IMG/VR virus record: IMGVR_UViG_3300017963_000188
Coordinates: 62,001 to 126,000 of that record
Strand: one strand, 5' to 3'
DNA: 64,000 bases
This document shows, piece after piece, positions 21,721 to 61,613 of this stretch (positions are counted from its first letter, which is position 1; each line of letters begins with the position of its first letter). The position numbers and the translations under genes were made by a program. The notes beneath the pieces are model-generated. The model did not search any database, was not told the origin of the DNA, and worked only from the letters and a program-made list of their open reading frames with translations.

Positions 21721-21722
21721 AT

Positions 21723-30240: not shown

Positions 30241-30326
30241 TGGTGGGTGAGGAGGGACTCGAACCCTCAAGCCCGAAGGCACAGGAACCTAAATCCTGCG
30301 TGTCTACCAAGTTCCACCACTCACCC
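30241..30326 (-). tRNA. trnL: tRNA-Leu(UAG)
   Basis: cloverleaf, loop TTTAGGT, long variable arm, CCA. Confidence 0.95.
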
Positions 30327-33514: not shown

Positions 33515-33602
33515 TGGTGCCGGGGGAGGGAATCGAACCCTCACGAGATTTCTCTCATCGGATTTTGAATCCGACGTGTCTACCTAGTTCCACCACCCCG
33601 GC
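33515..33602 (-). tRNA. trnL: tRNA-Leu(CAA)
   Basis: stem TCGGA/TCCGA, loop TTCAAAA, CCA. Confidence 0.95.
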
Positions 33603-33606
33603 TATA

Positions 33607-33692
33607 TGGTGCTGGAGGAGGGATTTGAACCCTCAATCCCTTACGGGCATAGCGTCCTGAACGCTACGTGTATACCGTTCCACCACTCCAGC
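33607..33692 (-). tRNA. trnL: tRNA-Leu(CAG)
   Basis: loop TTCAGGA, CCA. Confidence 0.95.
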
Positions 33693-33700
33693 AAATTGTT

Positions 33701-33788
33701 TGGTGCCGGAAGAGGGAATCGAACCCCCACGGGACAAGTCCCACTAGGACCTAAACCTAGCGTGTCTGCCTAGTTCCACCATTCCGGC
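33701..33788 (-). tRNA. trnL: tRNA-Leu(UAG)
   Basis: loop TTTAGGT, CCA. Confidence 0.95.
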
Positions 33789-33789
33789 C

Positions 33790-33875
33790 TGGTGTCTGGG
33801 GAGGGGATCGAACCCTCAAGCCTTTCGGCACAGCGACCTCAACGCTGCGTGTCTACCTAATTTCACCACCCAGAC
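33790..33875 (-). tRNA. trnL: tRNA-Leu(GAG)
   Basis: loop TTGAGGT, CCA. Confidence 0.95.
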
Positions 33876-33877
33876 TT

Positions 33878-33962
33878 TGGTGCTCAGGGAGGGATTCGAA
33901 CCCTCAAGCCTTTCGGCACAGGATTCTTAGTCCTGCGTGTATACCAGTTCCACCACCCGAGC
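33878..33962 (-). tRNA. trnL: tRNA-Leu(AAG)
   Basis: stem CAGGA/TCCTG, loop CTAAGAA, CCA. Confidence 0.93.
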
Positions 33963-33969
33963 ATATTTT

Positions 33970-34056
33970 TGGTGCTGGGGGAGGGAATCGAACCCTCACG
34001 ACACAAGGCCAGGGGATTTTAAGTCCCCAGTGTCTACCTAATTCCACCACCCCAGC
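33970..34056 (-). tRNA. trnL: tRNA-Leu(UAA)
   Basis: loop CTTAAAA, CCA. Confidence 0.95.
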
Positions 34057-34076
34057 ACAACACCTAAAATTTCAAA

Positions 34077-34244
34077 GATCAAACCTATCCCCTGCACACA
34101 GTACAGTAGTCTAGATCTGTACTGTGAGGATTATTAAATTACAAGAGTAACAGGGAAAGGGATAGATCGGTGGAAACGATTTCGGTTTTGGCAACGATGT
34201 CAATTCCCGTTTTCATCTCTCACCTCACCGTGTCGATTCACGGT
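34077..34244 (-). ncRNA. candidate structured leader/ncRNA upstream of Leu array
   Basis: nested stems 34085-91/34159-65 and 34097-106/34117-126; hairpin 34227-44; class-A-like promoter near 34250. Confidence 0.4.
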
Positions 34245-34297
34245 ACACTTAATATACAGTAGAGAAATCTTTTTGGCTAGTCTTTTTTTGATCTAGG

Positions 34298-48979: not shown

Positions 48980-49067
48980 TGGCAGAGGGTGAGGGAGTCG
49001 AACCCCCGCTAGTGTTACCTAGACCTTGGCTTTCGAAACCAGTGCCTTACCACTCGGCCAACCCTCT
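48980..49067 (-). tRNA. trnS: tRNA-Ser(CGA)
   Basis: loop TTCGAAA, long variable arm, A1:U72, G73, CCA. Confidence 0.9.
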
Positions 49068-49306
49068 AGTTCCTTCCCACATTGTTCACATGTATCAACC
49101 ACTTCATGTTGAGGTAGTTTACATCTTGAACACAACATCAAGATGGGCCTAATTTCAGTGGTGATCAGTTCATCCTTTTCATCCTTTACCATAGCTATAT
49201 CTTTAAATCCTATTACAGGATGTTTTTTCAAAGTCTCTGCTATACTTTTTGGTTCAGTGCCATACATATATGCAAAGGCAACTATTGACCAATTTTCCCT
49301 ACCCAT
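49019..49306 (-). CDS. zinc-ribbon hypothetical protein ending inside tRNA-Ser
   Basis: 95 aa, coupled start; stop in tRNA variable arm. Confidence 0.55.
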   Translation of the reverse strand: MGRENWSIVAFAYMYGTEPKSIAETLKKHPVIGFKDIAMVKDEKDELITTEIRPILMLCSRCKLPQHEVVDTCEQCGKELEGWPSGKALVSKAKV

Positions 49307-49532
49307 CTAAATTACCTTCAATTTCATTAGCATGTTTAATGAGCATCATACCCAGGTCTTTTGCTTCCTTTGGTGGGAGCCCAAGCCATGCTACTGGAGT
49401 ACCAAAATCCAAAATCACATTACCATCCTTATGACCAATAGCTAATTGAAGCTCTCCTTCGTCATGAGCATTCAGTTTACCACGAGGATATTTTCCCGTT
49501 TTCCCAGTCTTTGGTTTGATCTTGGTAACCAT
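49299..49532 (-). CDS. small conserved-looking phage protein
   Basis: GKLNAHDEGELQLAIG...DFGTPVAWLGL. Confidence 0.7.
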   Translation of the reverse strand: MVTKIKPKTGKTGKYPRGKLNAHDEGELQLAIGHKDGNVILDFGTPVAWLGLPPKEAKDLGMMLIKHANEIEGNLDG

Positions 49533-49710
49533 GTTGTGCCTTTCTATATTCTATATATTCAGGTCTTTCTAGGTGACCTTCTTTACATTTGCAGTCTGTT
49601 ATATGCAAACCACATCTATAACAACAACGATGCTTCTCACAGTATCCATGTGTTACGGTCATAACACCATGAAAGGTAACAGCATCTTTGTCACATTTTT
49701 CACATTTCAT
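49477..49710 (-). CDS. Cys-rich small protein
   Basis: 77 aa, ATGA-coupled. Confidence 0.55.
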   Translation of the reverse strand: MKCEKCDKDAVTFHGVMTVTHGYCEKHRCCYRCGLHITDCKCKEGHLERPEYIEYRKAQHGYQDQTKDWENGKISSW

Positions 49711-50318
49711 TTCAAAGCCTCGAACATTTTCTGATCATCTCCACAATGCTCTTTGAGCCGTTGCATCCAAGCATCAGTCTTGATTTTGAACATATGGGGA
49801 GGATAACCTTTCTTTAGAGGGGCTCCTTTACATACCACTCCTTCAGCACTTATTCCTTCGAGAGTCCCATCTCTTACCATTTGTATGAAGATGTCATTGA
49901 TGTTACCTCGATACAGCAACGGTGCTATCTCTACTCCTTCTGTAAGGTCAAGAAAATCTCGTGGTCCAAGAATACCTTTGCGATGCACATTGATGTCAAA
50001 CAAAAGAACATCATGACATTCTTCTTGGTGGAAACCAGCAAAAGAATTAGGACCAAAGAATTCAAAAAAACAAATGACACGTTCTAACCGTTTCTTCTTG
50101 AACCGATCTGTAATGGGACCTTCATATTTGGATTTCACAAGATCTTCAGCCTCAGCTAAAACTCCTTGATCAGTTCCGAGGAGTCGTTTACGAGAACCAA
50201 ATTTATAGAAACCACGCTTACGATTCCATTCAGCTCTGATATTAGACCCATCAATCTTATTGAAGGCATAATAAGAACCATTAAGAATGTCTCGTGATAT
50301 GGTAGGATACTGTTTCAT
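49707..50318 (-). CDS. RNA ligase-like (Rnl2-type nucleotidyltransferase domain)
   Basis: KIDGSN, FEFFG, LFDI, EGVVCK, FKIKT. Confidence 0.78.
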   Translation of the reverse strand: MKQYPTISRDILNGSYYAFNKIDGSNIRAEWNRKRGFYKFGSRKRLLGTDQGVLAEAEDLVKSKYEGPITDRFKKKRLERVICFFEFFGPNSFAGFHQEECHDVLLFDINVHRKGILGPRDFLDLTEGVEIAPLLYRGNINDIFIQMVRDGTLEGISAEGVVCKGAPLKKGYPPHMFKIKTDAWMQRLKEHCGDDQKMFEALK

Positions 50319-50569
50319 TGTTTTTCTTTCAAATGACCTTGAAGTAAATGTTTTTCTTGACCTGTAACTCTTTTACAGGGTGGTTCTTTGTTTCTACCTA
50401 TTAATCTACCTCCAGAATCAATATCCATTTCTCCAGGCATCATATATTCAATATCATCTATCTCATAGATAACTTTGAGAACACCACAGATACAACACCA
50501 TTCGTAAGTCATATCTGAAGGGGGTCCTCCTGGGAATGTTTGCCAGTTATGTTTCATCGTAATATCCAA
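50315..50569 (-). CDS. hypothetical protein
   Basis: 84 aa in operon. Confidence 0.55.
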   Translation of the reverse strand: MDITMKHNWQTFPGGPPSDMTYEWCCICGVLKVIYEIDDIEYMMPGEMDIDSGGRLIGRNKEPPCKRVTGQEKHLLQGHLKEKQ

Positions 50570-50867
50570 AAAGAGTTTCCCTCAACCCCCTTCCAATTAG
50601 AAGAGGGCCTCCTTCCCAACTACCTTTAAATTCATTATTCCATTTCACTCTTTGTTCTTCTCTATCATATTCAACAACTCCGATTATCACAAGGTCACTG
50701 AGTAACATGTCGTAGAGTTTTCTCCCAACTAAATTCTCAGAAGCAAAGATATGTTTAGCATCTGTAGCAAAACTGGTTTCTGTATTCATTAGACCTAGAC
50801 ACTGTGCTAATTTAAAAGCAGCGAAATCAATATCTACCCAGTCTTGCAACTCATCTTTAAGGGTCAT
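50547..50867 (-). CDS. hypothetical protein
   Basis: 106 aa; DWVDIDFAAFKLAQCLGL. Confidence 0.65.
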   Translation of the reverse strand: MTLKDELQDWVDIDFAAFKLAQCLGLMNTETSFATDAKHIFASENLVGRKLYDMLLSDLVIIGVVEYDREEQRVKWNNEFKGSWEGGPLLIGRGLRETLFGYYDET

Positions 50868-51064
50868 TTCTTTACACCTATATATGTCAACTCTACCCCA
50901 GTTTTTTCTTTAATGTATTTTATGAAATAGTCCACACTTTCACCATAAGGACTGTTTTTAAGAGCTGAAACAATGTAAGCTGCTGCTACTTGTTCTGCAA
51001 ATTTGATAGCAGCAGCTTCTCCATCCCTAGCCTCAATAAAGGCTATCCGATCTTCTTCCTTCAT
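50864..51064 (-). CDS. hypothetical protein
   Basis: EDRIAFIEARDG motif, ATGA-coupled. Confidence 0.65.
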   Translation of the reverse strand: MKEEDRIAFIEARDGEAAAIKFAEQVAAAYIVSALKNSPYGESVDYFIKYIKEKTGVELTYIGVKK

Positions 51065-51300
51065 TTCTCGGCCTTATTTTTCTGGACGCACTTTGGACAC
51101 ATATACCCACAATGTTCCCCACTTTTGGAATCTTTGAGTTGTATCCAGCCTTCATTTCTCACTGAGATTGCAGCAACCATTGGTGAAGTCCCAAGAGGAA
51201 ATGTGTATTCAATTTCTTTTTCACATGTACGGCATTTCATCTTGAGTTTATGTGTGTCCATCTTAACCTTCTTTGGATTGGAATATTTTTTGTGGTCCAA
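51061..51300 (-). CDS. zinc-ribbon protein
   Basis: CRTC...MCPKC. Confidence 0.6.
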   Translation of the reverse strand: MDHKKYSNPKKVKMDTHKLKMKCRTCEKEIEYTFPLGTSPMVAAISVRNEGWIQLKDSKSGEHCGYMCPKCVQKNKAEK

Positions 51301-51523
51301 ATTCTTTTATTGCCCCTTCTTCTGCCACGAACTTTTTAAATTTTTCTGGTCTATTTTCAGATAACCAAAGAGCATATTGAGCAGCCATTCCCAAACAGAT
51401 GTTACCCTTCAGCTCATCGATAGTGAGATCACCATCTAACACATCTTCAAACATGTCAATGGCATCTCGAAGAGCTTCTTCTGCAATCTGTTTCCTTTTC
51501 TCAAGGTCTTCAATATCATCCAT
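51263..51523 (-). CDS. hypothetical protein
   Basis: 86 aa. Confidence 0.6.
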   Translation of the reverse strand: MDDIEDLEKRKQIAEEALRDAIDMFEDVLDGDLTIDELKGNICLGMAAQYALWLSENRPEKFKKFVAEEGAIKEFGPQKIFQSKEG

Positions 51524-51540
51524 AAGGTTCTCTTTGAATT

Positions 51541-51625
51541 TGGCAGAGGGGAGGGGACTCGAACCCCTAAGGCTTTTACACCCACGACGTTCCAGGCCGT
51601 TGCCTTACCATTAGGCTACCCCTCT
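51541..51625 (-). tRNA. trnS: tRNA-Ser(GGA)
   Basis: loop CTGGAAC, A1:U72, G73, CCA. Confidence 0.93.
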
Positions 51626-51933
51626 GTATAGTTTATATATTCCTCCCTGTTCCCATCACAGAAAAATACATCTGGATTATAATAGAACAAGTCTTTTCGT
51701 CTAAAACTTTTGGTTCCCTCATTGGCATATTCTACACTGTGGATACCATCCTCTTCAGAAGGCACAAACTCTAGAAGAGGGACTATGTTATTATGTTTCA
51801 TGTCATTTTCAGCACACCATATCACAAGATCAACAATCAGCTCTGATGCTGAACAGAATCCTTGTTCTCTGATTATTTCACGAGCTTTCTCTATGATCTT
51901 GTCTTCTGCATCCATGATCCTCTCCAAAGTCAT
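51616..51933 (-). CDS. hypothetical protein ending inside tRNA-Ser
   Basis: 105 aa; stop is tRNA nt 8-10. Confidence 0.6.
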   Translation of the reverse strand: MTLERIMDAEDKIIEKAREIIREQGFCSASELIVDLVIWCAENDMKHNNIVPLLEFVPSEEDGIHSVEYANEGTKSFRRKDLFYYNPDVFFCDGNREEYINYTEG

Positions 51934-52223
51934 TTTTTTGACTTAGCCATCAAACCCATTATCTTCTGAGCTTCTTGTGTGATTTGGCACATTGTTTCTT
52001 CGCACACATCACAATCAAAGTTTTCATCAATATCTATCATGTCCTTTTTCAACTGGCACGTCTCAGGATCTCCATCCCATTCTCGTGTCATCTCATGGTA
52101 AAAGAAGCACATCTTTTCATATGCTTGGTCATAGAGAGCTGGTTCATTTGGGTCACGTTTCTTCAACTCATCTATAAGTTCTTTTACTGTCATATACTTG
52201 TCATACTCACCAATAGGCATCAA
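51930..52223 (-). CDS. hypothetical protein
   Basis: 97 aa, AGGAG SD. Confidence 0.6.
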   Translation of the reverse strand: MMPIGEYDKYMTVKELIDELKKRDPNEPALYDQAYEKMCFFYHEMTREWDGDPETCQLKKDMIDIDENFDCDVCEETMCQITQEAQKIMGLMAKSKK

Positions 52224-52300
52224 AATCTCCTGGTTCCTAGTTTGGCATAGACATCCTCATGGTACTCCTGTTCCCAATAAGGAATCTTTTCTAACCATAG

Positions 52301-52327
52301 ACTATACCGGAGAAATCTCTTTATTTT
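52301..52327 (-). promoter_or_regulatory. class A promoter
   Basis: A-rich-N11-CGGTATAGT. Confidence 0.5.
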
Positions 52328-52346
52328 CCAAGTCAACTTTTTCATT

Positions 52347-52841
52347 TTAAACTCCTAAAATTTCAATAGCTTTATCAGCTTGTTGTTCCGTCAGGCCAGT
52401 AGCCATCCCATTTTCTATATGCACTAGATGATTTTTCAAATGAGACATGTCGGAATCATCATCTAGAATCACAAATGATTCAATTTGATCTCCATGCAAA
52501 AAATGATACTGCTCTAACCATTTTTGTATTTCATCACCTCTGGTTTTTGCTAACCAGATACCATTTACACATTTATTGAGATCTGGGGTGACTCCAATAA
52601 CTTTTGCCTTCACTCCCTCTTTTTGTAAATGCTGAAATAGATCCTCATTGTCGATTCGAGACACAGATCTCCAAGAGCTAGAGATTACAATTTCAGCCCC
52701 TGTCTTAGTAGTGATTCTATTTAGGTTCTCTACAGCTTCAGGTTTGAATTTTTGAAACCTACTCTTCCTGATACGTACCCATGTCTTGGCCTGATCCCAA
52801 GTCATGAGCACACCATCTATGTCCAAAAAAACAACTTTCAT
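52347..52841 (-). CDS. HAD domain protein (Swiss-army-knife RNA repair type)
   Basis: VFLDIDGVL, VISSSWR, RGDEI..WL, FVILDD. Confidence 0.88.
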   Translation of the reverse strand: MKVVFLDIDGVLMTWDQAKTWVRIRKSRFQKFKPEAVENLNRITTKTGAEIVISSSWRSVSRIDNEDLFQHLQKEGVKAKVIGVTPDLNKCVNGIWLAKTRGDEIQKWLEQYHFLHGDQIESFVILDDDSDMSHLKNHLVHIENGMATGLTEQQADKAIEILGV

Positions 52842-53464
52842 GTCCCACCATTAGGGGGATCAAACCCCACTCCTAGTATTTCAGCAACACGTCTGTCTTC
52901 AGCATCACCCAGATCCTTCAGAGCTTTTGCTTTAGCTTCATTGAGTTTATCAACAGGTAGATCTTTTCGTACAGGAATTTTTCCCACTTCTTCTGGTTCA
53001 TCCATAAAGAAAACAAGAGCATCATCCTTAGGTACAGGAATTTCTTGTATCGGAAACAGCAAATTCATCCGATGAGAACTGGGATGAGCTTTGTAACCAC
53101 ATTCACATTTATATGCAGAATCTACCATTGAATACTGTTCGAACTTCAATGTTTTTTTACATTCTGGGCAAGGACCACCATCACGAGATACTGCTGCTAC
53201 CTTAGGCTCCTGAAGGAGTTTTACAGTTTTCTCAATCAGATGTGCTTTCTGTGATATTGATAAAGATTTTTGAACATCTCTGATGTCTCGAATGATTTGT
53301 CTAGCTTCACAACAACCAGTAATTCCACCTTTGTTACAAGGGTTAATGGTTTTACAATCACAAACCTTACCATCTCCTTCTTCAGTACCATAACCACAAA
53401 GATGTACTTGAAGTTCACGAGCTGTATGTTCTATCCTGCTTAGAATTTCTCCTATATTTTTCAT
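52838..53464 (-). CDS. Cys-rich hypothetical protein
   Basis: 208 aa. Confidence 0.65.
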   Translation of the reverse strand: MKNIGEILSRIEHTARELQVHLCGYGTEEGDGKVCDCKTINPCNKGGITGCCEARQIIRDIRDVQKSLSISQKAHLIEKTVKLLQEPKVAAVSRDGGPCPECKKTLKFEQYSMVDSAYKCECGYKAHPSSHRMNLLFPIQEIPVPKDDALVFFMDEPEEVGKIPVRKDLPVDKLNEAKAKALKDLGDAEDRRVAEILGVGFDPPNGGT

Positions 53465-53482
53465 GTAGGGTCTCCAAAGTTA

Positions 53483-53569
53483 TGGCAGAGGGGAGGGGAC
53501 TCGAACCCCTAAGGCTTTTACACCCACCCGATTAGCAGTCGGGCCTCTTACCAATTAGAGTACCCCTCT
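53483..53569 (-). tRNA. trnS: tRNA-Ser(GCU)
   Basis: loop CTGCTAA, A1:U72, CCA. Confidence 0.95.
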
Positions 53570-53580
53570 GTAAAAATTAT

Positions 53581-53671
53581 TGGCAGAGGGGGTGGGATTC
53601 GAACCCACGGGGGCTTTGACACCCCACCGGTTTTCAAGACCGGCACCATAGACCAGCTCGGACACCCCTCT
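53581..53671 (-). tRNA. trnS: tRNA-Ser(UGA)
   Basis: loop CTTGAAA, A1:U72, CCA. Confidence 0.95.
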
Positions 53672-53691
53672 GTATTTAACAACCTCCTTAT

Positions 53692-53766
53692 TGGCAGGGG
53701 TGCTGGGATTCGAACCCAGAGTCCAGGTTTTGGAGACCTGTGGTTTAGCCATTAACCGACACCCCT
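53692..53766 (-). tRNA. trnW: tRNA-Trp(CCA)
   Basis: loop CTCCAAA, CCA end. Confidence 0.95.
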
Positions 53767-53772
53767 GTATTT

Positions 53773-53848
53773 TGGTGGGTCCAGAGGGATTTGAACCCCC
53801 GACCTTCTGATTAAGAATCAGCAGCTCTACCAACTGAGCTATGGACCC
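53773..53848 (-). tRNA. trnK: tRNA-Lys(CUU)
   Basis: loop TTCTTAA, CCA. Confidence 0.93.
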
Positions 53849-53860
53849 TTCATTGCTCCT

Positions 53861-53937
53861 TGGTGGGATGGGAGGGACTTGAACCCCCGACGCTTGGAAC
53901 TTCAACCCAACGCTCTACCAATCTGAGCTACCATCCC
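53861..53937 (-). tRNA. trnF: tRNA-Phe(GAA)
   Basis: loop TTGAAGT, CCA. Confidence 0.93.
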
Positions 53938-53942
53938 ACAAA

Positions 53943-54029
53943 TGGTGGGCCGGGGAGGATTTGAACCTCCGTAGCCTTGCAGCGGCAGATTTACAGTCTG
54001 CTCCCTTTGACCAACTCGGGCACCGACCC
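53943..54029 (-). tRNA. trnY: tRNA-Tyr(GUA)
   Basis: loop CTGTAAA, long variable arm, CCA. Confidence 0.95.
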
Positions 54030-54037
54030 ATAATTTT

Positions 54038-54114
54038 TGGCGAGCCAGGTGGGACTCGAACCCACAACACTCGGATTAAAAGTCCGATACGCTACCAAAT
54101 TGCGTCACTGGCTC
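54038..54114 (-). tRNA. trnK: tRNA-Lys(UUU)
   Basis: loop CTTTTAA, G73, CCA. Confidence 0.95.
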
Positions 54115-54146
54115 ACTATTTAATGCCTCCTATCGAGACTTATCAT

Positions 54147-54221
54147 TGGCGGGAACGGAGGGATTCGAACCCCCAACCTAGCGGTTAACAGCCGCTAGCT
54201 CTACCATTGAGCTACGTTCCC
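54147..54221 (-). tRNA. trnN: tRNA-Asn(GUU)
   Basis: loop CTGTTAA, CCA. Confidence 0.95.
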
Positions 54222-54228
54222 AGTTATT

Positions 54229-54316
54229 TGGTGGGCAGGGAAGGATTCGAACCTCCGTACCCCCGAAGGGGATCGGGTCTACAGCCCGACGCCATTAACC
54301 ACTCGGCCACCTGCCC
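54229..54316 (-). tRNA. trnY: tRNA-Tyr(GUA), second copy
   Basis: loop CTGTAGA, long variable arm, CCA. Confidence 0.93.
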
Positions 54317-54317
54317 T

Positions 54318-54902
54318 TTATGTCCAGAGATGCCTCCATTGTCTAGACTCATCTCCAAAACATCTTCGTCCTTTCTCGTATTCTTCAACGACCTGCTTGA
54401 TAGTCAGGATTTCTCCTTCTCGAAAAGCAGGTTTCCCTTCTGCTAAAGCCTTCTCACATGCCTCACATCTATGATGTGTATTCCACACATCAGTTGGTAT
54501 TATCCCATGGACCACTACCACCCAATGATCTCGTGGGAGGTAGTAGCTACAGATGTGATCCATCCGTATCAGACTCACCCTGTGTTTTCTGATGCTGCCC
54601 TGGTAGTGACAACCACATGTGCCTTGACAGACACATTCGTCTGCTTTCCAGGTGGAGCAAAAGTGTTGTTCCCGTGGAAGTTCACCTTTCTCCTTCAGCA
54701 TCCTTCGGTTCCACTCCTTCTCTGTTACCTGTCGTGGTGACAGTTTATCATCCTCTACTTTCCATCCCAGTTCCCAAGCTCTCTTGCTGGGACAATCCTT
54801 TTTGAAAGGACAATTGGTGATGGGTTTCCCATCTTTTCGAGCACACCGTCCGTCCCAGAATTTCCACTTGGTCTTTGGATCGTCCCGGTATCCCATCACC
54901 AA
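54318..54902 (-). CDS. Cys-rich hypothetical protein
   Basis: 194 aa, stop adjacent to tRNA-Tyr. Confidence 0.65.
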   Translation of the reverse strand: MVMGYRDDPKTKWKFWDGRCARKDGKPITNCPFKKDCPSKRAWELGWKVEDDKLSPRQVTEKEWNRRMLKEKGELPREQHFCSTWKADECVCQGTCGCHYQGSIRKHRVSLIRMDHICSYYLPRDHWVVVVHGIIPTDVWNTHHRCEACEKALAEGKPAFREGEILTIKQVVEEYEKGRRCFGDESRQWRHLWT

Positions 54903-55078
54903 TTCTCCTTCTTCATCTCTTGCTTCTCGTTCCGTCGCTTCAAACGACGAGACAGGGCCTTCATGTTACGGGGATAGCAATGATAAGGGTTACAACATTG
55001 ACAACCCAAGCCACCCGGCCCCGTCTTCAGCTTCTTGTGCTTCTGATATTCCTTGCTTCCCATCTCATCACCTCCCAA
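54896..55078 (-). CDS. small basic protein
   Basis: GPGGLGCQCC...RRLKRR; class A promoter at 55081..55107. Confidence 0.6.
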   Translation of the reverse strand: MGGDEMGSKEYQKHKKLKTGPGGLGCQCCNPYHCYPRNMKALSRRLKRRNEKQEMKKENW

Positions 55079-55119
55079 GGTTCTATACTGAAGAGATCCG
55101 AGATTTTAAATTACTATTT

Positions 55120-55195
<76 letters not shown>

Positions 55196-55324
55196 TTTTA
55201 TTTTCTCCCTTCAAATGCACACACACAGAGATCTCTCCTAGACTCTCTTTCAGCACCAAGATGTAAAGGTACTGGTAGAGTCTTAGCTCTTACTAAACCA
55301 ATATGAGGATTTATTCTTGGGGGA

Positions 55325-55398
55325 GGAGGAAACCACACCAGTGCCTGGCTGAATCTCAGTGGCTACGATGGTAATTGTGTGGTCCATAACGGTCCTCC
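55325..55398 (-). ncRNA. candidate structured RNA
   Basis: nested stems 55325-30/55393-98 and 55332-38/55377-83 in GC-rich intergenic patch. Confidence 0.35.
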
Positions 55399-55492
55399 AT
55401 ATGATGACCTACACTTGACTATACACATAAGGATATTTTTTTGCAAGCAGAAAATAGATTATTTATATTTCTATAGTCTAGAGAGGTGATTC

Positions 55493-56356
55493 ATGATAAT
55501 AAGACCGAAAGATTGGGAAGCTACAAGTGATGAAGCTGTAGATTTCTTGAACTCTATACAAAGACCAAAACACTATTATAGAGGTATGACCGATCAAGAA
55601 TATAAAGCTACGGTCGGTAAAGGTGATCCAGTCCAATCCACAGGAGCTTTCTCTCACAGTTCTGAAGGGACAAATTTCTCAGAATATCCTGCTGATGCTG
55701 AGAGCTATGTAAACTTTGGTCGTGATGACCCAAGAAGAACTGGGAAATCAAATTGGCTTGTAGAAGTAGCAGAAACCCCAACCATGTATCGAGACACTGA
55801 TGGGTACTACAAAGATAAAGAACCTGTAGATACCGTGACAAGGATATGGGAATTTTACCCCGAAGATGGAGCTATCAAGACTAGGAAAGTGAAGGGTAGT
55901 GATATGAGACTAGTGAATCGAGTTGCTCTTAGACATTTGTTTGCTAGATATGCTGATGAAGTTAAAAAAGAGCTGAAATACGATGTCAAGAATATGAAAG
56001 GTGTAGAAACAGTCAAAGAGTACCACAAGGAATTCACCCCTGGGTCACAGAAGGGTGGAGCTTTCCCTGATATGGACTTAATAGAAATGGTATGGGTCGT
56101 TGGTGATGGAGAACAAGGGAACTACACAGTGATGTGTGAACTCTATGTAGAAAAGGGTGGGATCTTACTTCGAGATGAAGGGCCTCAAGAAACCTTTGCA
56201 GGTTCAGTTCGAGGTGAAGCTGCTCTTGGACCTAAGGGAGGGCTTCAATCTGTAAGACAGATCCAAGGTGAAAAGTTCACTGGTAAGCTGGATGAAGTGG
56301 TTGGTAAGTTCGACAAAGCCATTGGTAAAATGATTCAACAACTTGAAGCTATGTAA
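55493..56356 (+). CDS. ART-like N-terminal domain, RLVNRVALR linker, C-terminal domain
   Basis: YYRGM...TNFSEYPADAESY; internal ATG at 55904. Confidence 0.65.
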   Translation: MIIRPKDWEATSDEAVDFLNSIQRPKHYYRGMTDQEYKATVGKGDPVQSTGAFSHSSEGTNFSEYPADAESYVNFGRDDPRRTGKSNWLVEVAETPTMYRDTDGYYKDKEPVDTVTRIWEFYPEDGAIKTRKVKGSDMRLVNRVALRHLFARYADEVKKELKYDVKNMKGVETVKEYHKEFTPGSQKGGAFPDMDLIEMVWVVGDGEQGNYTVMCELYVEKGGILLRDEGPQETFAGSVRGEAALGPKGGLQSVRQIQGEKFTGKLDEVVGKFDKAIGKMIQQLEAM

Positions 56357-56601
56357 TCTTTAGCTTTACTTAATTCTTTTTCCACCACAGGAACCCTCTT
56401 TTTCAATTGATCTATGATTTTATCTTCAGCTTCTTCTATAGATCCCACTGTTTGATCAAAACAATGATGTATACTTGGAACTATTTGTCTTAGATTCCAT
56501 AACTTATGTCCCAGGTCATACTCTATACGGTAAGTCAAATCTAGAAGATTGAATTCATAGCATTGATGCTCTACCGAAACATTTTCCCAATCTAACTTCA
56601 T
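56335..56601 (-). CDS. hypothetical protein
   Basis: 88 aa. Confidence 0.55.
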   Translation of the reverse strand: MKLDWENVSVEHQCYEFNLLDLTYRIEYDLGHKLWNLRQIVPSIHHCFDQTVGSIEEAEDKIIDQLKKRVPVVEKELSKAKDYIASSC

Positions 56602-57492
56602 CTATTCCTCCAACATAATTGTCACATTCTTTGGTTTCACATAATATTTAGGGTTGTATTCTTCACAAGCACCATCATCACAGAATCTCAATGTGTTCAC
56701 TTCTTTGAAACCATCGTCTATGACTTTGTAATGCTCCTCTGAAGCCTTAATCCATTTGAAAGCCTCATCAGCAAATTCTTTGTTCTCTACAGCTTCCACA
56801 TCGTTATGGAAATTGGCTCGTCTCTTTAGCTCATCCATCCCAGCATGGTCATAAACACATCCCCGTCCGGTCTGATACATCCAGAACTTCCAAGCCATGA
56901 TATATTTCATGACCCATCCTTTGATACCACGGCTGTAATACTGTGTCTCTTCATCATAAAGACTATCTGCTAGAAGCATGAAGGCACATTTTACAAACTC
57001 TATAGCAGGTCGTAAGCATTGTTCTCTGATATTGGTATCAAATCCCCTTGAGATATTCCATTCCATAAGAGCTGCCTGGCTCATACGTTTAATTTCTCTC
57101 ATATACTCATGGGAAATGATGAACTTGGCTTCTCGTATCTTTTGTTCGTATTCTGGTGGGAGTGCTGGGACCCAAGGTATGGGTTGTTCAGGATGATATT
57201 GTTTTGCCCATGCTTCATGTTTCTCTTTGAGTTTAGCATCAAAGCCATCCCAATGAAGACGATAGGCAGTAACCTTTTTCCTTTTTATTAGTTCTGATTT
57301 GCTTTCAGGGTCTCCATCCATTTCAAAATCATAGACTACTGGTTCTTGGAGTTCTGGATCTTGAGCTTTTGGATACAGATGTTTCACCAAATATACATCT
57401 GATACTCTTAGGATTTGAGGGAAAAATAGAGACTTCTTGAGACTTAACATGACGTTCCTCCGTCGTTTAATTGTTATGCCATGACCCTTCAT
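56602..57492 (-). CDS. hypothetical protein
   Basis: 296 aa. Confidence 0.75.
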   Translation of the reverse strand: MKGHGITIKRRRNVMLSLKKSLFFPQILRVSDVYLVKHLYPKAQDPELQEPVVYDFEMDGDPESKSELIKRKKVTAYRLHWDGFDAKLKEKHEAWAKQYHPEQPIPWVPALPPEYEQKIREAKFIISHEYMREIKRMSQAALMEWNISRGFDTNIREQCLRPAIEFVKCAFMLLADSLYDEETQYYSRGIKGWVMKYIMAWKFWMYQTGRGCVYDHAGMDELKRRANFHNDVEAVENKEFADEAFKWIKASEEHYKVIDDGFKEVNTLRFCDDGACEEYNPKYYVKPKNVTIMLEE

Positions 57493-57511
57493 GGCTTTCC
57501 AATCTCAGATA

Positions 57512-57778
57512 CTAAAGAGGTGTGTCAGTTTTGTCAATATTTTCTTTAAGGTGCTTGATTTCTTTACGTTGCTTATCAATTATGGAAATAAGTTCCATGA
57601 GAATATCTCTCATGTATACTCCACCACGACCTGTTACTAGATATATCTTTGCAACATCCCAGCTACTGGCAAATTCACGTAGCTCTTCGATTCGTTTATT
57701 CCTCTTCCCACTCTTCTTGGGCTTTGCTGAGTAGTTCAACGATCCAGAAGAACCTGTCTCTTCTTTCTTTGCAACCAT
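57512..57778 (-). CDS. hypothetical protein
   Basis: 88 aa, overlaps GH19 end; start uncertain. Confidence 0.45.
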   Translation of the reverse strand: MVAKKEETGSSGSLNYSAKPKKSGKRNKRIEELREFASSWDVAKIYLVTGRGGVYMRDILMELISIIDKQRKEIKHLKENIDKTDTPL

Positions 57779-58352
57779 GCATTTTCCCCAGTGCTACTTG
57801 ACGTTGCTTTTGACTCTGATCATACCCTTCACGCCACGGACCAGCGTTAATTATATAGCTGATTTTATCAAAAGCTAAGTAATCAGCATGGCCATTGAGA
57901 TCATGGTCATCCCAATATAGAAGACTAGCAAAGAACCCATGCTCAGGTTGTTCTAGAAGTTCTGGATTCTTTACATAAGCATCAGGGCTATCTACAATCC
58001 CAGCCTCATATGCAGCTTCACTAGCTCTGGTATAATTCTTCAAGCCAGTTGTTTGGATCGGACCCCTACCACAATATTTAGCCCCCATACCACGGGCATT
58101 GTGGCCAAGATCTCCTCTGAAATCGTATTCTTGATAATTGTCATTTCCTGAGTCCCATTCCTTCCACCACCTCAAATCACCAGATTCAAGAGCAAGCTGA
58201 GCCAGAAGACAAGCCATGCGATTGACTGTATTGACTTCAATCCTGAGCATCCCCTCATGAAGATATTTATGATATTCATAGAGTTTATCATCAGGAAGTT
58301 TAGGCATCATTTTTTTAAGTAATTCACTACTGAAATAGGGTGTTAGTTCCAT
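57696..58352 (-). CDS. glycoside hydrolase family 19 (endolysin candidate)
   Basis: LAQLALESG, KYCGRGPIQTTGLKNY, SYIINAG. Confidence 0.88.
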   Translation of the reverse strand: MELTPYFSSELLKKMMPKLPDDKLYEYHKYLHEGMLRIEVNTVNRMACLLAQLALESGDLRWWKEWDSGNDNYQEYDFRGDLGHNARGMGAKYCGRGPIQTTGLKNYTRASEAAYEAGIVDSPDAYVKNPELLEQPEHGFFASLLYWDDHDLNGHADYLAFDKISYIINAGPWREGYDQSQKQRQVALGKMHGCKERRDRFFWIVELLSKAQEEWEEE

Positions 58353-58390
58353 CTTGGACCTCCATTGGTTATTTGTCCTAGATGGATAGC

Positions 58391-58927
58391 TTACTGTGTA
58401 GTATATAATTTTGCAAGGTCAAATGTGGTTCGAGTCACACCATAAACTTCTATATCTGTCCCCATAACAGCAAAAGGTAGGTCTATAATTTCATTTGATC
58501 TATATATTTTCATAGATACTTTCTCTAGACTCAAAAGTTCTATGTTACCATCAAAAAATTCTTCCTGGAAATCATCAATGAAGTATCGGATCTGGTCTCC
58601 TTTATGAAGGGTACGAAGTCTCATCTTTTTTATCTGCACATCCATCTTCTTCCTGAATGGTTCATAATGATACGTATATGGACTCCAGGGTTCATCTAAC
58701 ATTTGACATTCAGAGACATGACAGAGAGGGAATTGATCCTTATTCTCATTTGGTTCTGTGAAGAGGTTAGGCCATTCGATACATTCAGGATCATCACATA
58801 GGAGGCATTGGGCACGGTCTGATTCTGGGGTTGGTTGTATCTCTGCTCTATACTTATTAGACTCCCCTACAAACCCGCTCATAGGTTTCAACCATACCTT
58901 ATCCCCAGGTTTACGTCTCTTGCTCAT
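58391..58927 (-). CDS. hypothetical protein
   Basis: start placed at MSKRRK downstream of tRNA-Gly. Confidence 0.6.
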   Translation of the reverse strand: MSKRRKPGDKVWLKPMSGFVGESNKYRAEIQPTPESDRAQCLLCDDPECIEWPNLFTEPNENKDQFPLCHVSECQMLDEPWSPYTYHYEPFRKKMDVQIKKMRLRTLHKGDQIRYFIDDFQEEFFDGNIELLSLEKVSMKIYRSNEIIDLPFAVMGTDIEVYGVTRTTFDLAKLYTTQ

Positions 58928-58949
58928 ATTGAATCCAAAATAGATGAGT

Positions 58950-59025
58950 TGGAGCGGGGTAGGGGACTCGAACCCCCAACCTGATGCATGGCAAGCACCT
59001 GCTCTACCAATTGAGCTAACCCCGC
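58950..59025 (-). tRNA. trnG: tRNA-Gly(GCC)
   Basis: loop TTGCCAT, U73, CCA. Confidence 0.93.
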
Positions 59026-59243
59026 TGAAAACATTCCTCACATTTGTAGATATGAGGATGTGCAAATTTATGGTTCACCACAGATTTATATTTCATACAC
59101 CAATGACGACCTTTTCTTTTCAATGTGTCCTGCTCATGTTCTGTGGGTGACAAATGATGACAATTTGGAGGACACAGTTTTTTCAAGATATCTGGGTCCA
59201 TCTTTTCAAGTTCTGTGATTGGTATTGAATACATCAGCACCAC
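59016..59243 (-). CDS. Cys-rich protein ending inside tRNA-Gly
   Basis: 75 aa; stop is tRNA nt 8-10. Confidence 0.55.
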   Translation of the reverse strand: MVLMYSIPITELEKMDPDILKKLCPPNCHHLSPTEHEQDTLKRKGRHWCMKYKSVVNHKFAHPHIYKCEECFQRG

Positions 59244-59246
59244 CTC

Positions 59247-59504
59247 TCATGTCTTTTTCCTGAACATAACAAGGTTCCCTATCTCATCTTTAGGGACTCC
59301 TTCATAGTACCCTTCTACAAATTCTTCTAGATCATGTCCCATCATTTCTGCAACTAAAAGTTGTAGAGAAGCTACTTTTTGTAACAAAAATCCAACAGCA
59401 ATAGAATCTCTATTGGTTGGTCCTACTTGTCTCCACACAGCTTCACAATGGTCATCGAGTTCTTTCACCAAGTTTTCAGATTGTTGTCGTATCAAATCTA
59501 TCAT
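59247..59504 (-). CDS. hypothetical protein
   Basis: 85 aa. Confidence 0.55.
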   Translation of the reverse strand: MIDLIRQQSENLVKELDDHCEAVWRQVGPTNRDSIAVGFLLQKVASLQLLVAEMMGHDLEEFVEGYYEGVPKDEIGNLVMFRKKT

Positions 59505-59522
59505 CTCAACACCTTATGTATT

Positions 59523-59598
59523 TGGAGCGGGTGACGGGACTCGAACCCGTAACAACTAGCTTGGAAGGCTAGCGTCCTACCAATTGGACGACACCCGC
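59523..59598 (-). tRNA. trnG: tRNA-Gly(UCC)
   Basis: loop CTTCCAA, CCA. Confidence 0.95.
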
Positions 59599-59763
59599 TT
59601 ATTTATATATACAAAAACCCAATACTTATGGTTTATCTTCCTTCACTTTTTTATATACCGTTGGCTTCCCACACTTCTCACATCTAAGCAGTTTTCCATA
59701 TTCTACTTCAGTGGTATATCTATGAGTACACCACGGACAAGTGACAGAAACCTTGGTTTTCAT

Positions 59764-60219
59764 TCATCTTCCCTTAATATACTCTTCGAACACAATCAAA
59801 TCAATATCAGTTTTTGATCCTATTCCATCTAGAACTTCTTTCACTTTATCCCAATCCAAACCTCCAAGTCCAGCACCTATTCTTGGAAGACCAATAGTCT
59901 TGAGATTTATTTGCTCAGAAGCTCCTACCATCCGTCTCACAGATGCTCTAATTGCATCAAGACGAGCCTTTGTTCTCCACGATACCTGTGTGCCCAAGTT
60001 GAATATGATCGTCCCTTCAGGACTCCTCCAGGCAAATACAGAGCCTAGTTTAAACTCCCTTGCTTTACATCTTCTCCGATACTCCTGATACATCTCAGGA
60101 TATCGTGATCTGAATTCAAGAGCTATGCCTTTCCCCATAGCACCTTCACAATTACATCCATGAGCAATAGCATCTAGGGAGTGATGGAAAAGATCACCAG
60201 AAATGTATTTGACTGACAT
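59764..60219 (-). CDS. macro domain protein (ADP-ribose hydrolase, DarG-like)
   Basis: GDLF, IAHGCNCEGAMGKGIALEF, LPRIGAGLGGLDW; start moved below tRNA-Thr. Confidence 0.92.
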   Translation of the reverse strand: MSVKYISGDLFHHSLDAIAHGCNCEGAMGKGIALEFRSRYPEMYQEYRRRCKAREFKLGSVFAWRSPEGTIIFNLGTQVSWRTKARLDAIRASVRRMVGASEQINLKTIGLPRIGAGLGGLDWDKVKEVLDGIGSKTDIDLIVFEEYIKGR

Positions 60220-60231
60220 CTGCAATCCATT

Positions 60232-60306
60232 TGGAGCCGGTGAGTGGAATTGAACCACCAACCTACTGTTTACGAGACAGTTGCTCTACCGTTGAGCTAC
60301 ACCGGC
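60232..60306 (-). tRNA. trnT: tRNA-Thr(CGU)
   Basis: loop CTCGTAA, CCA. Confidence 0.95.
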
Positions 60307-60599
60307 TATCGATTCTTTTTACGAGACTTCTTAGCTATCTTGTTTTTAGCCCTTCGTTTACGAATCGAGTTTTGATATTGAAGTTCCTTCTGATCTAATC
60401 TAGAAAGCTTCCTGGCAGGTTTTGCCATAGTATCTAGACCTTCTTGGGCTCTTTTGATTTGATTCTCCAACTCTTTTCTAGCCGTCTCAAATTTGGCTTT
60501 TGCAGTCGGATCTTCCAGCTTCTCAATTTCAGCATCCAAATTTTCAATGGCTGCCATGAGTTCTTTCTTCTTCTTTTCTGCAAATTCTCTTCTGTCCAT
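60306..60599 (-). CDS. coiled-coil protein with basic tail
   Basis: ends RRAKNKIAKKSRKKNR; stop G is tRNA G1. Confidence 0.7.
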   Translation of the reverse strand: MDRREFAEKKKKELMAAIENLDAEIEKLEDPTAKAKFETARKELENQIKRAQEGLDTMAKPARKLSRLDQKELQYQNSIRKRRAKNKIAKKSRKKNR

Positions 60600-60666
60600 G
60601 TGCTACCTCCTAACCTATAGTACCCCAGTTATGTTTTTATATACATCATTTTTGTAAGGAGATCCC

Positions 60667-61194
60667 ATGGATATTGTCAGTAGAGTAATCCAACGCTATC
60701 TCAGAGCGTCTAGATACGATACAGATAGTCTTGAGCCTGGTTACATTGGAAAGTACGTGATACATGACCACAGGGCTCAGAACAGGCATTTTGATTTACG
60801 TTTAGAGTTCCCTACCAGCAAGGGAAAAGTTTTCCGTTCCTGGACCATTCCCAAACACACTATTCCCAAAAGTGTAGGTGATAAAGTCCTTGCCACAGAG
60901 ACAGAAGACCACCCAATGAGTTGGGGTGATGTTGTAGATTTTGATGAGACACATGAAATCCCTGAAGGTGAGTATGGTGCTGGTACTGTCAAACTCTATG
61001 ACAAAGGTAAATTTGCTCTCATAGATATGGACTATGATAGTAAGTATGTCTTCAAAATGATTGGTGAGAAACTTGATGGAGTCTGGTCTTTAGTCAAAAC
61101 TGATGGTAAGAACTTCCTTTTGGTACGTTCAAGTGCTGATCAACCAGAACTTGAAGAACCTGAAGTACAAAAAGCGATCAAAAAGTTGGAATAG
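60667..61194 (+). CDS. stand-alone LigD 3'-phosphoesterase domain with DIVSRVIQRYLRA leader
   Basis: HDHRAQNRHFDLRLE, SWTIPK, TEDHP, GEYGAGTV. Confidence 0.88.
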   Translation: MDIVSRVIQRYLRASRYDTDSLEPGYIGKYVIHDHRAQNRHFDLRLEFPTSKGKVFRSWTIPKHTIPKSVGDKVLATETEDHPMSWGDVVDFDETHEIPEGEYGAGTVKLYDKGKFALIDMDYDSKYVFKMIGEKLDGVWSLVKTDGKNFLLVRSSADQPELEEPEVQKAIKKLE

Positions 61195-61218
61195 TCCCAT
61201 AATCTACATTATAGATTA

Positions 61219-61294
61219 TGGAGCTGGCACCCGGATTCGAACCGGGGACCTCATCCTTACCAAGGATGTGCTCTACCTACTGAGCTATGCCAGC
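61219..61294 (-). tRNA. trnT: tRNA-Thr(GGU)
   Basis: loop TTGGTAA, CCA. Confidence 0.95.
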
Positions 61295-61297
61295 TAA

Positions 61298-61374
61298 TGG
61301 AGCCGGTGAAGGGACTTGAACCCCCAACAACCTGATTACAAATCAGGTGCTCTACCAAATTGAGCTACACCGGC
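61298..61374 (-). tRNA. trnT: tRNA-Thr(UGU)
   Basis: loop TTTGTAA, CCA. Confidence 0.95.
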
Positions 61375-61613
61375 TAATACTCTATATTATAGAGTTCCAT
61401 GAACTCTTTGAATTGCAATCGTCTCCAACCTTCATCAACTATGTCTGGCATCCATCGAGCATTAGCAAACATAGGTCCACAATAGATATTGTCTTCACCA
61501 CCATTAAAAAATGGTTTGTGACATCCTATGAAGATGTTATCACCAGCAGGATCAAATACAGCTAGGAATGGTTTGAGCTTCAAATATATCTCACTAGCTT
61601 TTTCATGATCCAT
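61374..61613 (-). CDS. hypothetical protein
   Basis: 79 aa, GGAGG SD; stop G is tRNA G1. Confidence 0.6.
   Translation of the reverse strand: MDHEKASEIYLKLKPFLAVFDPAGDNIFIGCHKPFFNGGEDNIYCGPMFANARWMPDIVDEGWRRLQFKEFMELYNIEY

Follow-up and report, generated by a model that had tools for sequence, protein, structure and literature searches.

Six intact leucine tRNA genes, one per leucine codon, lie in a row on the minus strand of a 358,038-bp uncultured phage contig (IMG/VR record IMGVR_UViG_3300017963_000188), and 82 nt upstream of the first of them ends a 25-codon ORF that uses each of the six leucine codons exactly once, which may let the phage sense and adjust its own leucine tRNA supply. 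The window analysed here comprises 64,000 nucleotides (positions 62,001 to 126,000 of that record), and all coordinates refer to it (Table 1). The six genes were found with ARAGORN exactly as described in the first-pass annotation, separated by spacers of 7, 2, 1, 8 and 4 nt, together with a seventh, separate tRNA-Leu gene. All seven score well above the gathering score of 29 bits of the Rfam tRNA model (Infernal). They have fully paired acceptor, anticodon and T stems with at most one G-U pair per stem, a variable arm of 13-15 nt, U33, a purine at position 37, discriminator A73 and an encoded CCA, and none looks like a pseudogene. A pattern written for Leu-Leu junctions matched 5 times in the window and 0 times in 100 shuffles. 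The Ser (UGA, GCU, GGA, CGA) and Thr (UGU, GGU, CGU) sets, also noted in the first-pass annotation, are present as well.

Table 1. Features of the tRNA-Leu locus, in window coordinates.
Feature	Coordinates	Strand	Rfam score (bits)	Remarks
Promoter-like element upstream of the leader (inferred)	34251..34279	-		TAGCCA-17-TATATT, with an A-run and CTGTATATT; resembles the repeated motif AAAAATCTG-N8-CAGTATAGAA found upstream of other genes
Ribosome-binding site	34217..34229	-		GGTGAGGTGAGAG, immediately before the leader ATG; near-identical to the AGGAGGTGA-N3-4-ATG sites of the phage's other genes
Leader mini-ORF	34139..34216	-		25 codons plus stop, encoding MKTGIDIVAKTEIVSTDLSLSLLLL
Leu-codon tract	34142..34165	-		CTA TCC CTT TCC CTG TTA CTC TTG
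Perfect 10-bp hairpin	34097..34126	-		CACAGTACAG / CTGTACTGTG, 10-nt loop; 12 nt after the leader stop codon
Purine-rich segment	34077..34095	-		GCAGGGGATAGGTTTGATC; predicted to pair with the Leu-codon tract and enclose the hairpin
U-rich tract	34066..34076	-		TTTGAAATTTT; between the leader structure and the first tRNA
tRNA-Leu(UAA)	33970..34056	-	56.3	First gene of the array; loop CUUAAAA
tRNA-Leu(AAG)	33878..33962	-	56.2	Non-standard sixth isoacceptor; loop CUAAGAA
tRNA-Leu(GAG)	33790..33875	-	48.3	Shares its variable arm with Leu-AAG and is 82% identical to it
tRNA-Leu(UAG)	33701..33788	-	50.1	Array copy; resembles the UUR-type paralogues
tRNA-Leu(CAG)	33607..33692	-	57.0	
tRNA-Leu(CAA)	33515..33602	-	58.6	Last gene of the array
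tRNA-Leu(UAG), seventh gene	30241..30326	-	53.1	Separate copy 3.2 kb downstream; about 70% identical to the array's UAG copy (69-74% by the two alignments used); same anticodon stem as Leu-AAG
Twenty-one further tRNA genes	48980..63801	-		Ser x4, Trp, Lys x2, Phe x2, Tyr x2, Asn, Gly x2, Thr x3, Asp x2, Cys, Met; twenty more tRNAs and a tmRNA lie beyond the window end

The array is not a Leu-specific oddity but the leucine part of a set of 48 tRNAs plus a tmRNA, all on one strand and spread over about 57 kb, which can read all 61 codons and in which all tRNAs have an encoded CCA. Genes for a CCA-adding enzyme, two RNA ligases, RlaP, LigT-like, HAD_SAK_2, PTP-SAK-like, LigD_N and Macro proteins are interleaved with the tRNAs. 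Leu is the commonest amino acid of the phage (8.7%) and all six Leu codons are used (12-27% each), CUU being the most frequent (27%). The description given in the first-pass annotation is right, and so is its idea that translation independence is under selection, whereas its Leu-specific framing is not supported. Of the three causes it suggested, destruction of host tRNA-Leu is supported only in general form; nothing points to leucine in particular. Independence from host modification enzymes fits one Watson-Crick anticodon per Leu codon, but the Leu-AAG loop looks built to be a TadA substrate, which points the other way. A codon mismatch with a GC-rich host cannot be judged because the host is unknown. 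The most unusual feature, the upstream mini-ORF, had been missed.

Five of the six Leu anticodons are the ordinary bacterial complement and only AAG is extra. The Leu-AAG gene has A37, unlike the other CUN readers, which have G37, and its loop is identical to the phage's own Arg-ACG loop (CUACGAA) except at position 35. The loop does not match the E. coli-type motif YUACGAA, and E. coli TadA did not edit a streptococcal Leu-AAG (PMC11472039). It does, however, fit the expanded YUAMGRA consensus of Streptococcus pyogenes TadA (PMC11472039), and in a permissive host the anticodon may become IAG; no deaminase gene was seen in the approximately 92 kb of the contig that were read. As in the bacterial tRNA-Leu(AAG) edited by an expanded-specificity TadA (Oenococcus, Streptococcus; PMC11472039, PMC13249217), this is a class II tRNA with A34 that is associated with high CUU use. 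In the Lactobacillales, the only order compared in PMC13249217, AAG replaces GAG and no family has both, while here the two genes are adjacent, and the loop carries A37, like Arg-ACG, rather than the 37 residue of the streptococcal tRNA. Class II Leu-AAG genes with this exact loop are very rare in 185,579 species genomes, and most real hits are phage-like arrays. The origin of the seven Leu genes left no usable signal, since paralogue and foreign best matches are both about 0.8 identity; in-situ duplication holds only for Ser-GGA and Ser-GCU, which share identical 3' halves.

Six of the last eight sense codons of the leader ORF are Leu codons. This is the only 8-, 10- or 12-codon window containing all six Leu codons in 92 kb, counting both strands and all three frames, and only 5 such places occur in 3.37 Mb of other DNA, which gives a chance of about 2e-4 for a 240-nt strand-specific target. 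It should be noted that the leader was noticed post hoc. Among all tRNA clusters of this phage it is the only upstream small ORF that has an ATG, an SD and enrichment in cognate codons. In the MFE fold (-51.8 kcal/mol, z = -2.9 against 200 shuffles) the Leu-codon tract pairs with the downstream purine-rich segment, and this helix is lost when a ribosome footprint is placed on Leu codons 2-5, although these are single-sequence predictions with no covariation, and the CU-rich tract could exist for structure alone. The 10-bp hairpin is present in the MFE structure and is unique in the window, with 0 matches in shuffles. It was rejected as a plain intrinsic terminator because it lacks a U-tail; no terminator was called in 34057-34140, and the U-rich tract before the first tRNA is weak. 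A Rho-type or processing output remains possible. The promoter-like element was listed by a consensus scan, but such hits are not above chance for the region. Rfam has no family for the leader.

Comparative support for the leader is lacking. Searches with the flanking 308-aa ORF in IMG/VR and JGI metagenomes and with the HNH-RNA ligase in IMG/VR returned only the phage itself, or proteins without the array, none closer than 57% identity (RNA ligase) or 29-50% (flanking ORF), and other assemblies of the phage were identical over 6.9 kb and 11 kb. Among GenBank phages there was no near match, and the distant search hit single tRNA-Leu genes only; they give existence and rough rarity, not frequencies. 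No similar cognate-codon leader precedes any other tRNA cluster of this phage, and none precedes 867 clusters in other loci, or the 67 Leu-first arrays or the arrays for other amino acids in other viral loci.

We consider the locus to be the leucine module of a near-autonomous decoding set. The six genes are most likely transcribed as a single precursor, which host RNase P and 3' trimming would then cut apart, and together with the 42 other phage tRNAs and the tmRNA they would keep phage translation going when the host tRNA pool is depleted or damaged, the AAG gene giving a direct reader for CUU. We propose that ribosome transit through the leader reports whether every Leu isoacceptor is available. 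If any one is short, the ribosome would stall and the CU-rich tract could no longer pair with the purine-rich segment (or would be hidden from Rho), so that read-through or maturation of the tRNA-Leu precursor would rise, giving homeostatic feedback. The transcription unit, the processing, the A-to-I editing and the whole regulatory logic are inferred, and we regard this explanation as about as likely as not.

The main alternative, which remains possible, is that the six genes are simply the leucine share of a generic huge-phage tRNA set and that the mini-ORF arose by chance or as a by-product of a CU-rich structural or processing element. In its favor, Leu arrays with five anticodons recur in unrelated large viral contigs and one other array has six, none with a Leu-rich leader, huge phages with up to 67 tRNAs are known (PMC7162821), and neither a terminator before the array nor cognate leaders elsewhere were detected. 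It leaves unexplained, however, that the only all-six-Leu-codon window in 92 kb lies just upstream of the only six-Leu array, in frame with an ATG and a phage-type ribosome-binding site. Compensation for Leu codons that the host reads poorly appears doubtful. The phage is CpG-depleted (40% GC), its Leu codon use is flat, and CUU and CUA (16%) are matched by the extra AAG gene and by two UAG genes, respectively, but tRNAs are also kept for its rarest codons (UCG 3%, CCG 4%, ACG 7%) and ANN tRNAs are lacking for GCU and GGU, which are more frequent than CUU. Tuning to codon usage alone thus does not explain the set, and a search for a host or donor through the GMP-reductase-like protein in 185,579 genomes found nothing.

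A Leu-specific counter-defence, in which isoacceptors cleaved or inactivated by the host or a competing element are replaced by resistant copies and the leader detects the resulting stalls, is unlikely. The repair genes among the tRNAs, the fact that Leu is the only family with seven genes and an A34 member, and the departure of Leu-AAG from the G37 rule would be in line with it, but the repair genes are not specific to Leu, all 20 amino acids are covered, so the pressure looks global, no Leu-targeting nuclease was identified here and the other six Leu anticodon loops are conventional. It is very unlikely that the contig is a cellular, plasmid or chimeric assembly carrying a bacterial tRNA operon. 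Capsid and terminase genes were not seen in the 92 kb examined and tRNA arrays of this type also turn up in MAG bins, yet the same sequence was assembled independently in several samples (a 358-kb JGI contig, 350-kb and 79-kb ENA contigs, and Logan contigs), there are many PHROG-specific families with hits down to 1e-129, and relatives of the HNH-RNA ligase were found only in jumbo or huge phages. The co-occurrence of AAG and GAG, not seen in any family of the Lactobacillales, the only order compared, also speaks against a bacterial operon.

The locus shares with the tRNA complements of huge phages (PMC7162821) a genome over 200 kb, dozens of tRNAs on one strand, a tmRNA, and tRNA repair and ligation genes; in these phages tRNA number scales with genome size. 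Here, in contrast, every Leu codon has its own Watson-Crick anticodon in one uninterrupted array of canonical class II genes. In a partial sample of about 215 viral loci only one other array had six anticodons, and one of its members is a 76-nt class I tRNA. No leader ORF has been described for such arrays. Like the ribosome-mediated leader-peptide attenuators leuL, hisL and pheL/pheM and the Rho-linked tnaC and mgtL types (PMC1183508, PMC3082878), the mini-ORF is short, has a run of codons cognate to the regulated product, may overlap RNA that can fold in other ways and is placed directly 5' of the genes in question. It differs in that the regulated genes would be tRNA genes instead of biosynthetic or synthetase genes, that all six synonymous codons appear once each instead of repeats of one or two, and that a canonical terminator hairpin with a U-tract is missing. 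Tentatively, shortage or damage of any single Leu isoacceptor could raise the output of the whole array, which would be the first leader-peptide control of tRNA genes and the first leader that samples a whole synonymous codon family.

Large tRNA sets in huge phages are known, but how they are regulated, and why particular isoacceptors are kept, is not. The array and its upstream ORF form a compact, testable unit of about 800 bp. If the ORF is a sensor, it would show that a virus can monitor decoding capacity codon by codon, that leader-peptide control extends to tRNA genes and that a natural design exists for isoacceptor-specific reporters. With AAG and GAG side by side and an AAG loop that mimics the TadA substrate, the locus is also a natural case for asking when bacteria-type systems tolerate a second inosine tRNA.

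ARAGORN identified 28 tRNA genes in the window, all on the minus strand, among them a block of six tRNA-Leu genes with the anticodons UAA, AAG, GAG, UAG, CAG and CAA in transcription order, separated by spacers of 7, 2, 1, 8 and 4 nt, and a seventh, separate tRNA-Leu(UAG). All 28 genes were confirmed by the tRNA covariance model of Rfam, with the Leu genes scoring 48-59 bits against a threshold of 29. Scripted parsing of each cloverleaf showed that every acceptor, anticodon and T stem is fully paired, that the variable arms are 13-15 nt long and that U33, A73 and an encoded CCA are present in all seven Leu genes; none looks like a pseudogene. The genes are 60-82% identical to one another, so they are old paralogues or separate acquisitions rather than recent copies. 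The description in the first-pass annotation (six tandem genes, one anticodon per Leu codon, plus a seventh copy) is confirmed as written. Three tandem copies of a 16-nt unit (GATGCAAGCTGGGTGA on the transcribed strand) form the 3' end of a 64-codon ORF and run into the first bases of the seventh tRNA-Leu, repeating its 5' acceptor sequence GGGTGAG.

The 308-aa ORF flanking the array matches IMG/VR UViG 3300017963_000188, which is the same as JGI contig Ga0180437_10000024 (358,038 bp), at 100% identity. The same sequence was assembled independently in ENA contigs of 350 kb and 79 kb and in Logan runs, and was identical wherever it was compared. Proteins in the window hit phage families strongly (phrog_2426 at 7.5e-129 and an HNH-RNA ligase, phrog_24030, at 2.5e-124). 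The closest RNA-ligase homologues (about 50-53% identity) are found in uncultured huge phages, Salicola phage SCTP-2, Caulobacter jumbo phages and Ralstonia phage RsoM2USA, while Xanthomonas phage XacN1 and Agrobacterium phage Atu_ph07 match over only about 61% of the query at 49-53% identity. No near DNA match was found in GenBank phages. The element is therefore an uncultured huge phage with no close sequenced relative. The whole window shows a strong CpG depletion (observed/expected 0.43, or 0.41 without the tRNAs) at a GC content of 40%, and NCG and CGN codons are correspondingly rare, which may be a host or restriction-avoidance signature.

To place the array in its wider context, the sequence was extended beyond the window end by exact-protein look-ups and the pieces (L003, L004 and L006) were joined, yielding a reconstructed region of 92 kb. 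It holds 48 tRNA genes and one tmRNA (tag ANDNALPMAA, Rfam 166.7 bits), all on the same strand and spread over about 57 kb, and all 48 tRNA genes encode CCA. The 20 tRNA genes beyond the window end are Met x2, Ala x2, Ile x2, Val x2, Gln x2, His, Pro x4, Arg x4 and Glu. The anticodons cover all 20 amino acids and, by standard wobble rules, all 61 sense codons; four-codon boxes carry two or three isoacceptors (GNN, UNN, sometimes CNN), and the only A34 tRNAs are Arg-ACG and Leu-AAG. One of the three CAU tRNAs has a U1-U72 mismatch at the top of the acceptor stem, which is initiator-like; AUA makes up 26% of Ile codons. tRNA-Ser(GGA) and tRNA-Ser(GCU) share the same 5' acceptor strand and an identical 45-nt 3' half (3' part of the variable arm, T arm, 3' acceptor strand, discriminator and CCA) but differ in the D and anticodon arms, which is evidence of recombination or gene conversion between isoacceptors within the phage. 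All four Ser tRNAs share the acceptor stem, with an A1-U72 pair. An Rfam hit to the DUF3800-VI RNA motif (42.5 bits, threshold 35) lies just downstream of tRNA-Glu. Leucine is not singled out by having tRNAs, and five of its six anticodons are the ordinary bacterial set; the singular points are the extra AAG gene next to GAG, the uninterrupted six-gene block and the second UAG copy.

Genes of RNA repair and tRNA maintenance are interleaved with the tRNAs and form a dense set, which includes DHH, Metallophos, LigD_N and Macro genes in addition to those listed individually in the table. This fits the view in the huge-phage literature that such phages carry tRNAs together with enzymes that re-ligate tRNAs cleaved by host defences (PMC7162821), and it is evidence for conflict over tRNA integrity in general, not over leucine. 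The phage also encodes signalling genes of unknown role in infection, namely a hybrid PAS-histidine kinase with a receiver domain directly downstream of the Leu array and a HisKA_7TM-GGDEF protein among the tRNAs.

Coordinates of the features of the tRNA-Leu locus and its surroundings (window positions unless prefixed by the name of a retrieved sequence piece or locus)
Feature	Coordinates	Strand
Six-gene tRNA-Leu array	33515-34056	-
Seventh tRNA-Leu(UAG)	30241-30326	-
Tandem copies of the 16-nt unit	30320-30373	-
Stop of the ORF upstream of the leader	34298	
Promoter-like element	34279-34251	-
ATG of the leader ORF	34216	-
End of the leader ORF	34139	-
Perfect 10-bp hairpin	34126-34097	-
Purine-rich segment GCAGGGGATAGGTTTGATC	34095-34077	-
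Repeated promoter-like motif	39600-39643, 40244-40294, 41668-41711, 42385-42435	+
Repeated promoter-like motif	55061-55113; about 30540-30590	-
RNA-repair and tRNA-maintenance gene set	12232-23049, 38538-39551, 49707-50318, 52347-52841, 60667-61194	
LigT-like 2H phosphoesterase	13670-14680	
PTP-SAK-like phosphatase	15688-16209	
Class II CCA-adding enzyme with an HD domain	17236-18594	
RlaP	21961-23049	
HNH-Rnl RNA ligase	38538-39551	
Second RNA ligase	49707-50318	
HAD_SAK_2	52347-52841	
Hybrid PAS-histidine kinase with a receiver domain	31495-33450	-
HisKA_7TM-GGDEF protein	L004:2216-3760	
tRNA-Ser(GGA) and tRNA-Ser(GCU)	51541-51625 and 53483-53569	-
DUF3800-VI RNA motif	L006:6797-6845	
CAU tRNA with the U1-U72 mismatch	L006:8446-8521	
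tmRNA (about 18.6 kb past window position 64000)	L006:9503-9860	
tRNA with anticodon UUA in another array	L047:4230-4306	

Codon usage was determined in 79 non-overlapping ORFs of the window. Leu is the commonest amino acid (8.7%) and all six codons are well used, with CUU accounting for 27% of Leu codons, CUC for 17%, CUA and UUG for 16% each, and CUG and UUA for 12% each. The extra AAG tRNA matches the top codon and the duplicated UAG matches CUA. Codon matching is nevertheless not the whole story, since the phage keeps tRNAs for codons that it nearly avoids (UCG 3%, CCG 4%, ACG 7%) and has no ANN tRNA for GCU or GGU, which are used more often than CUU.

The CUN readers GAG, CAG and both UAG copies have G37, and the UUR readers have A36-A37-A38, as expected. 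Leu-AAG breaks this pattern with the loop CUAAGAA, which contains A37; the loop of the phage's own Arg-ACG is CUACGAA, so that the two A34 tRNAs have the same loop except at position 35. The motif of E. coli TadA is YUACGAA, and YUAMGRA is the widened motif of Streptococcus pyogenes TadA, which edits tRNA-Leu(AAG), whereas E. coli TadA did not edit that tRNA (PMC11472039). GtRNAdb places almost all bacterial tRNA-Leu(AAG) genes in the class Bacilli, and within the one order compared in that study (Lactobacillales) no family has both AAG and GAG (PMC13249217). The AAG-GAG pair of the phage therefore departs from the bacterial pattern, and the loop suggests selection for deamination in a permissive host. 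A scan of one genome for each of 185,579 species for class II Leu-AAG genes with this exact loop gave only 29 stretches, about what chance predicts, of which thirteen contain a real tRNA-Leu(AAG) gene. Five of these sit in tRNA-gene clusters, four of which are phage-like arrays in MAG bins (one of these is a 425,361-bp contig, equal in length to an IMG/VR huge-phage contig), and the other eight are solitary genes, mostly in Gammaproteobacteria MAGs. The contigs JBBACR010000001.1 (L317, labelled a Pacearchaeota MAG) and IMGVR_UViG_3300035208_004923 (L023) are both 425,361 bp long and both carry the run Leu-UAG, Leu-AAG, Gln-UUG, Leu-UAA, Leu-UAA, Gln-UUG (order on the + strand of each locus); a huge-phage contig appears to be binned as an archaeal genome. 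The MAG contigs L308, L313 and L314 also look like phage tRNA arrays, and other viral or MAG tRNA arrays that carry Leu-AAG (L047 and L313) also contain a tRNA with anticodon UUA, a putative ochre suppressor.

To assess how rare a six-anticodon Leu array is, a junction pattern that captures all five Leu-Leu junctions of the array was run over IMG/VR together with a second, less specific pattern. Among about 215 loci, one other array has six anticodons; it lies on a 252-kb contig (L008) in the order AAG, CAG, GAG, UAG, UAA, CAA, and its UAG member is a 76-nt class I tRNA. Eight loci have five anticodons, several of them as tandem blocks followed by Ser blocks. AAG occurs in about 15 loci, and together with GAG only in L008 and in one further locus (L296). 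Although these are lower-bound, local counts and not frequencies, multi-isoacceptor Leu blocks are thus a recurring feature of large viral contigs, and a fully canonical six-gene block is rare but not unique in kind.

The 241-nt gap between the stop of the upstream ORF and the first tRNA was then read on the minus strand. A promoter-like element is followed by a ribosome-binding site, GGTGAGGTGAGAG, nearly identical to the phage's usual AGGAGGTGA-N3-4-ATG, and by an ATG that opens a 25-codon ORF encoding MKTGIDIVAKTEIVSTDLSLSLLLL. The promoter-like element resembles a motif repeated upstream of other genes in the window, TT(T/C)AAAAATCTG-N8-TCAGTATAGAA, which is followed within a few bases by AGGAGGTGA and ATG and is probably a phage-specific promoter with a very short 5' UTR; the version preceding the Leu leader is looser. 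The last eight sense codons of the ORF are CTA TCC CTT TCC CTG TTA CTC TTG, i.e. they contain the six different Leu codons, once each. In the whole 92 kb, on both strands and in all frames, this is the only stop-free window of 8, 10 or 12 codons that contains all six Leu codons, and in 3.37 Mb of other DNA only five such places exist. This gives an expectation of about 2e-4 for a strand-specific 240-nt target, before an in-frame ATG and ribosome-binding site are asked for; allowing generously for the post hoc choice of window and distance, the coincidence remains near 1e-3.

Twelve nucleotides after the stop codon of this ORF lies a perfect 10-bp hairpin, unique in the window, followed by the purine-rich segment GCAGGGGATAGGTTTGATC and a U-rich tract. 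The 176-nt leader is predicted to fold to -51.8 kcal/mol (z = -2.9, with 2 of 200 shuffles as stable). In the predicted fold the Leu-codon tract pairs with the purine-rich segment and encloses the hairpin, while the ribosome-binding site and AUG pair with codons 13-16. When pairing was forbidden in a 30-nt ribosome footprint centred on Leu codons 2-5, the long-range helix was removed and the hairpin region refolded. No canonical intrinsic terminator is present and Rfam has no matching family. Possible output steps are weak termination at the U-rich tract, occlusion of a C-rich, G-poor Rho loading site as in tnaC-type control, or altered processing of the precursor.

The codon content of the ORF and its position raise the possibility that it acts as a sensor of leucine decoding, but it may instead be a coincidence or a purely structural element. 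No other tRNA cluster of this phage has a cognate-codon leader, and none of 67 Leu-first arrays, and no arrays for other amino acids among 867 clusters in other viral loci, shows enrichment over background. Without relatives in which conservation or covariation could be tested, we consider the sensor reading tentative and at best about as likely as not, and the coincidental or structural alternative only somewhat less likely. A literature search found no report of leader-peptide control of a tRNA operon, nor of a leader using all six Leu codons, although absence from the literature searched is not proof of novelty. The Leu-specific selective explanations offered in the first-pass annotation (destruction of host tRNA-Leu, independence from host modification enzymes or codon mismatch with a GC-rich host) are only partly supported.

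We infer that the array is made as a single precursor from a dedicated promoter and that RNase P cleaves at each 5' end, leaving 1-8 nt trailers to be trimmed back to the encoded CCA. The array would supply Leu decoding when host tRNAs fall or are cleaved, with possible A34-to-I34 editing, and ribosome stalling at any of the six Leu codons would increase array output. The array itself is real, intact and part of the near-complete tRNA sets already known from huge phages. Two features go beyond what is described, namely a canonical one-anticodon-per-codon Leu block that includes an A34 tRNA beside its G34 counterpart, and an upstream mini-ORF that samples all six Leu codons.
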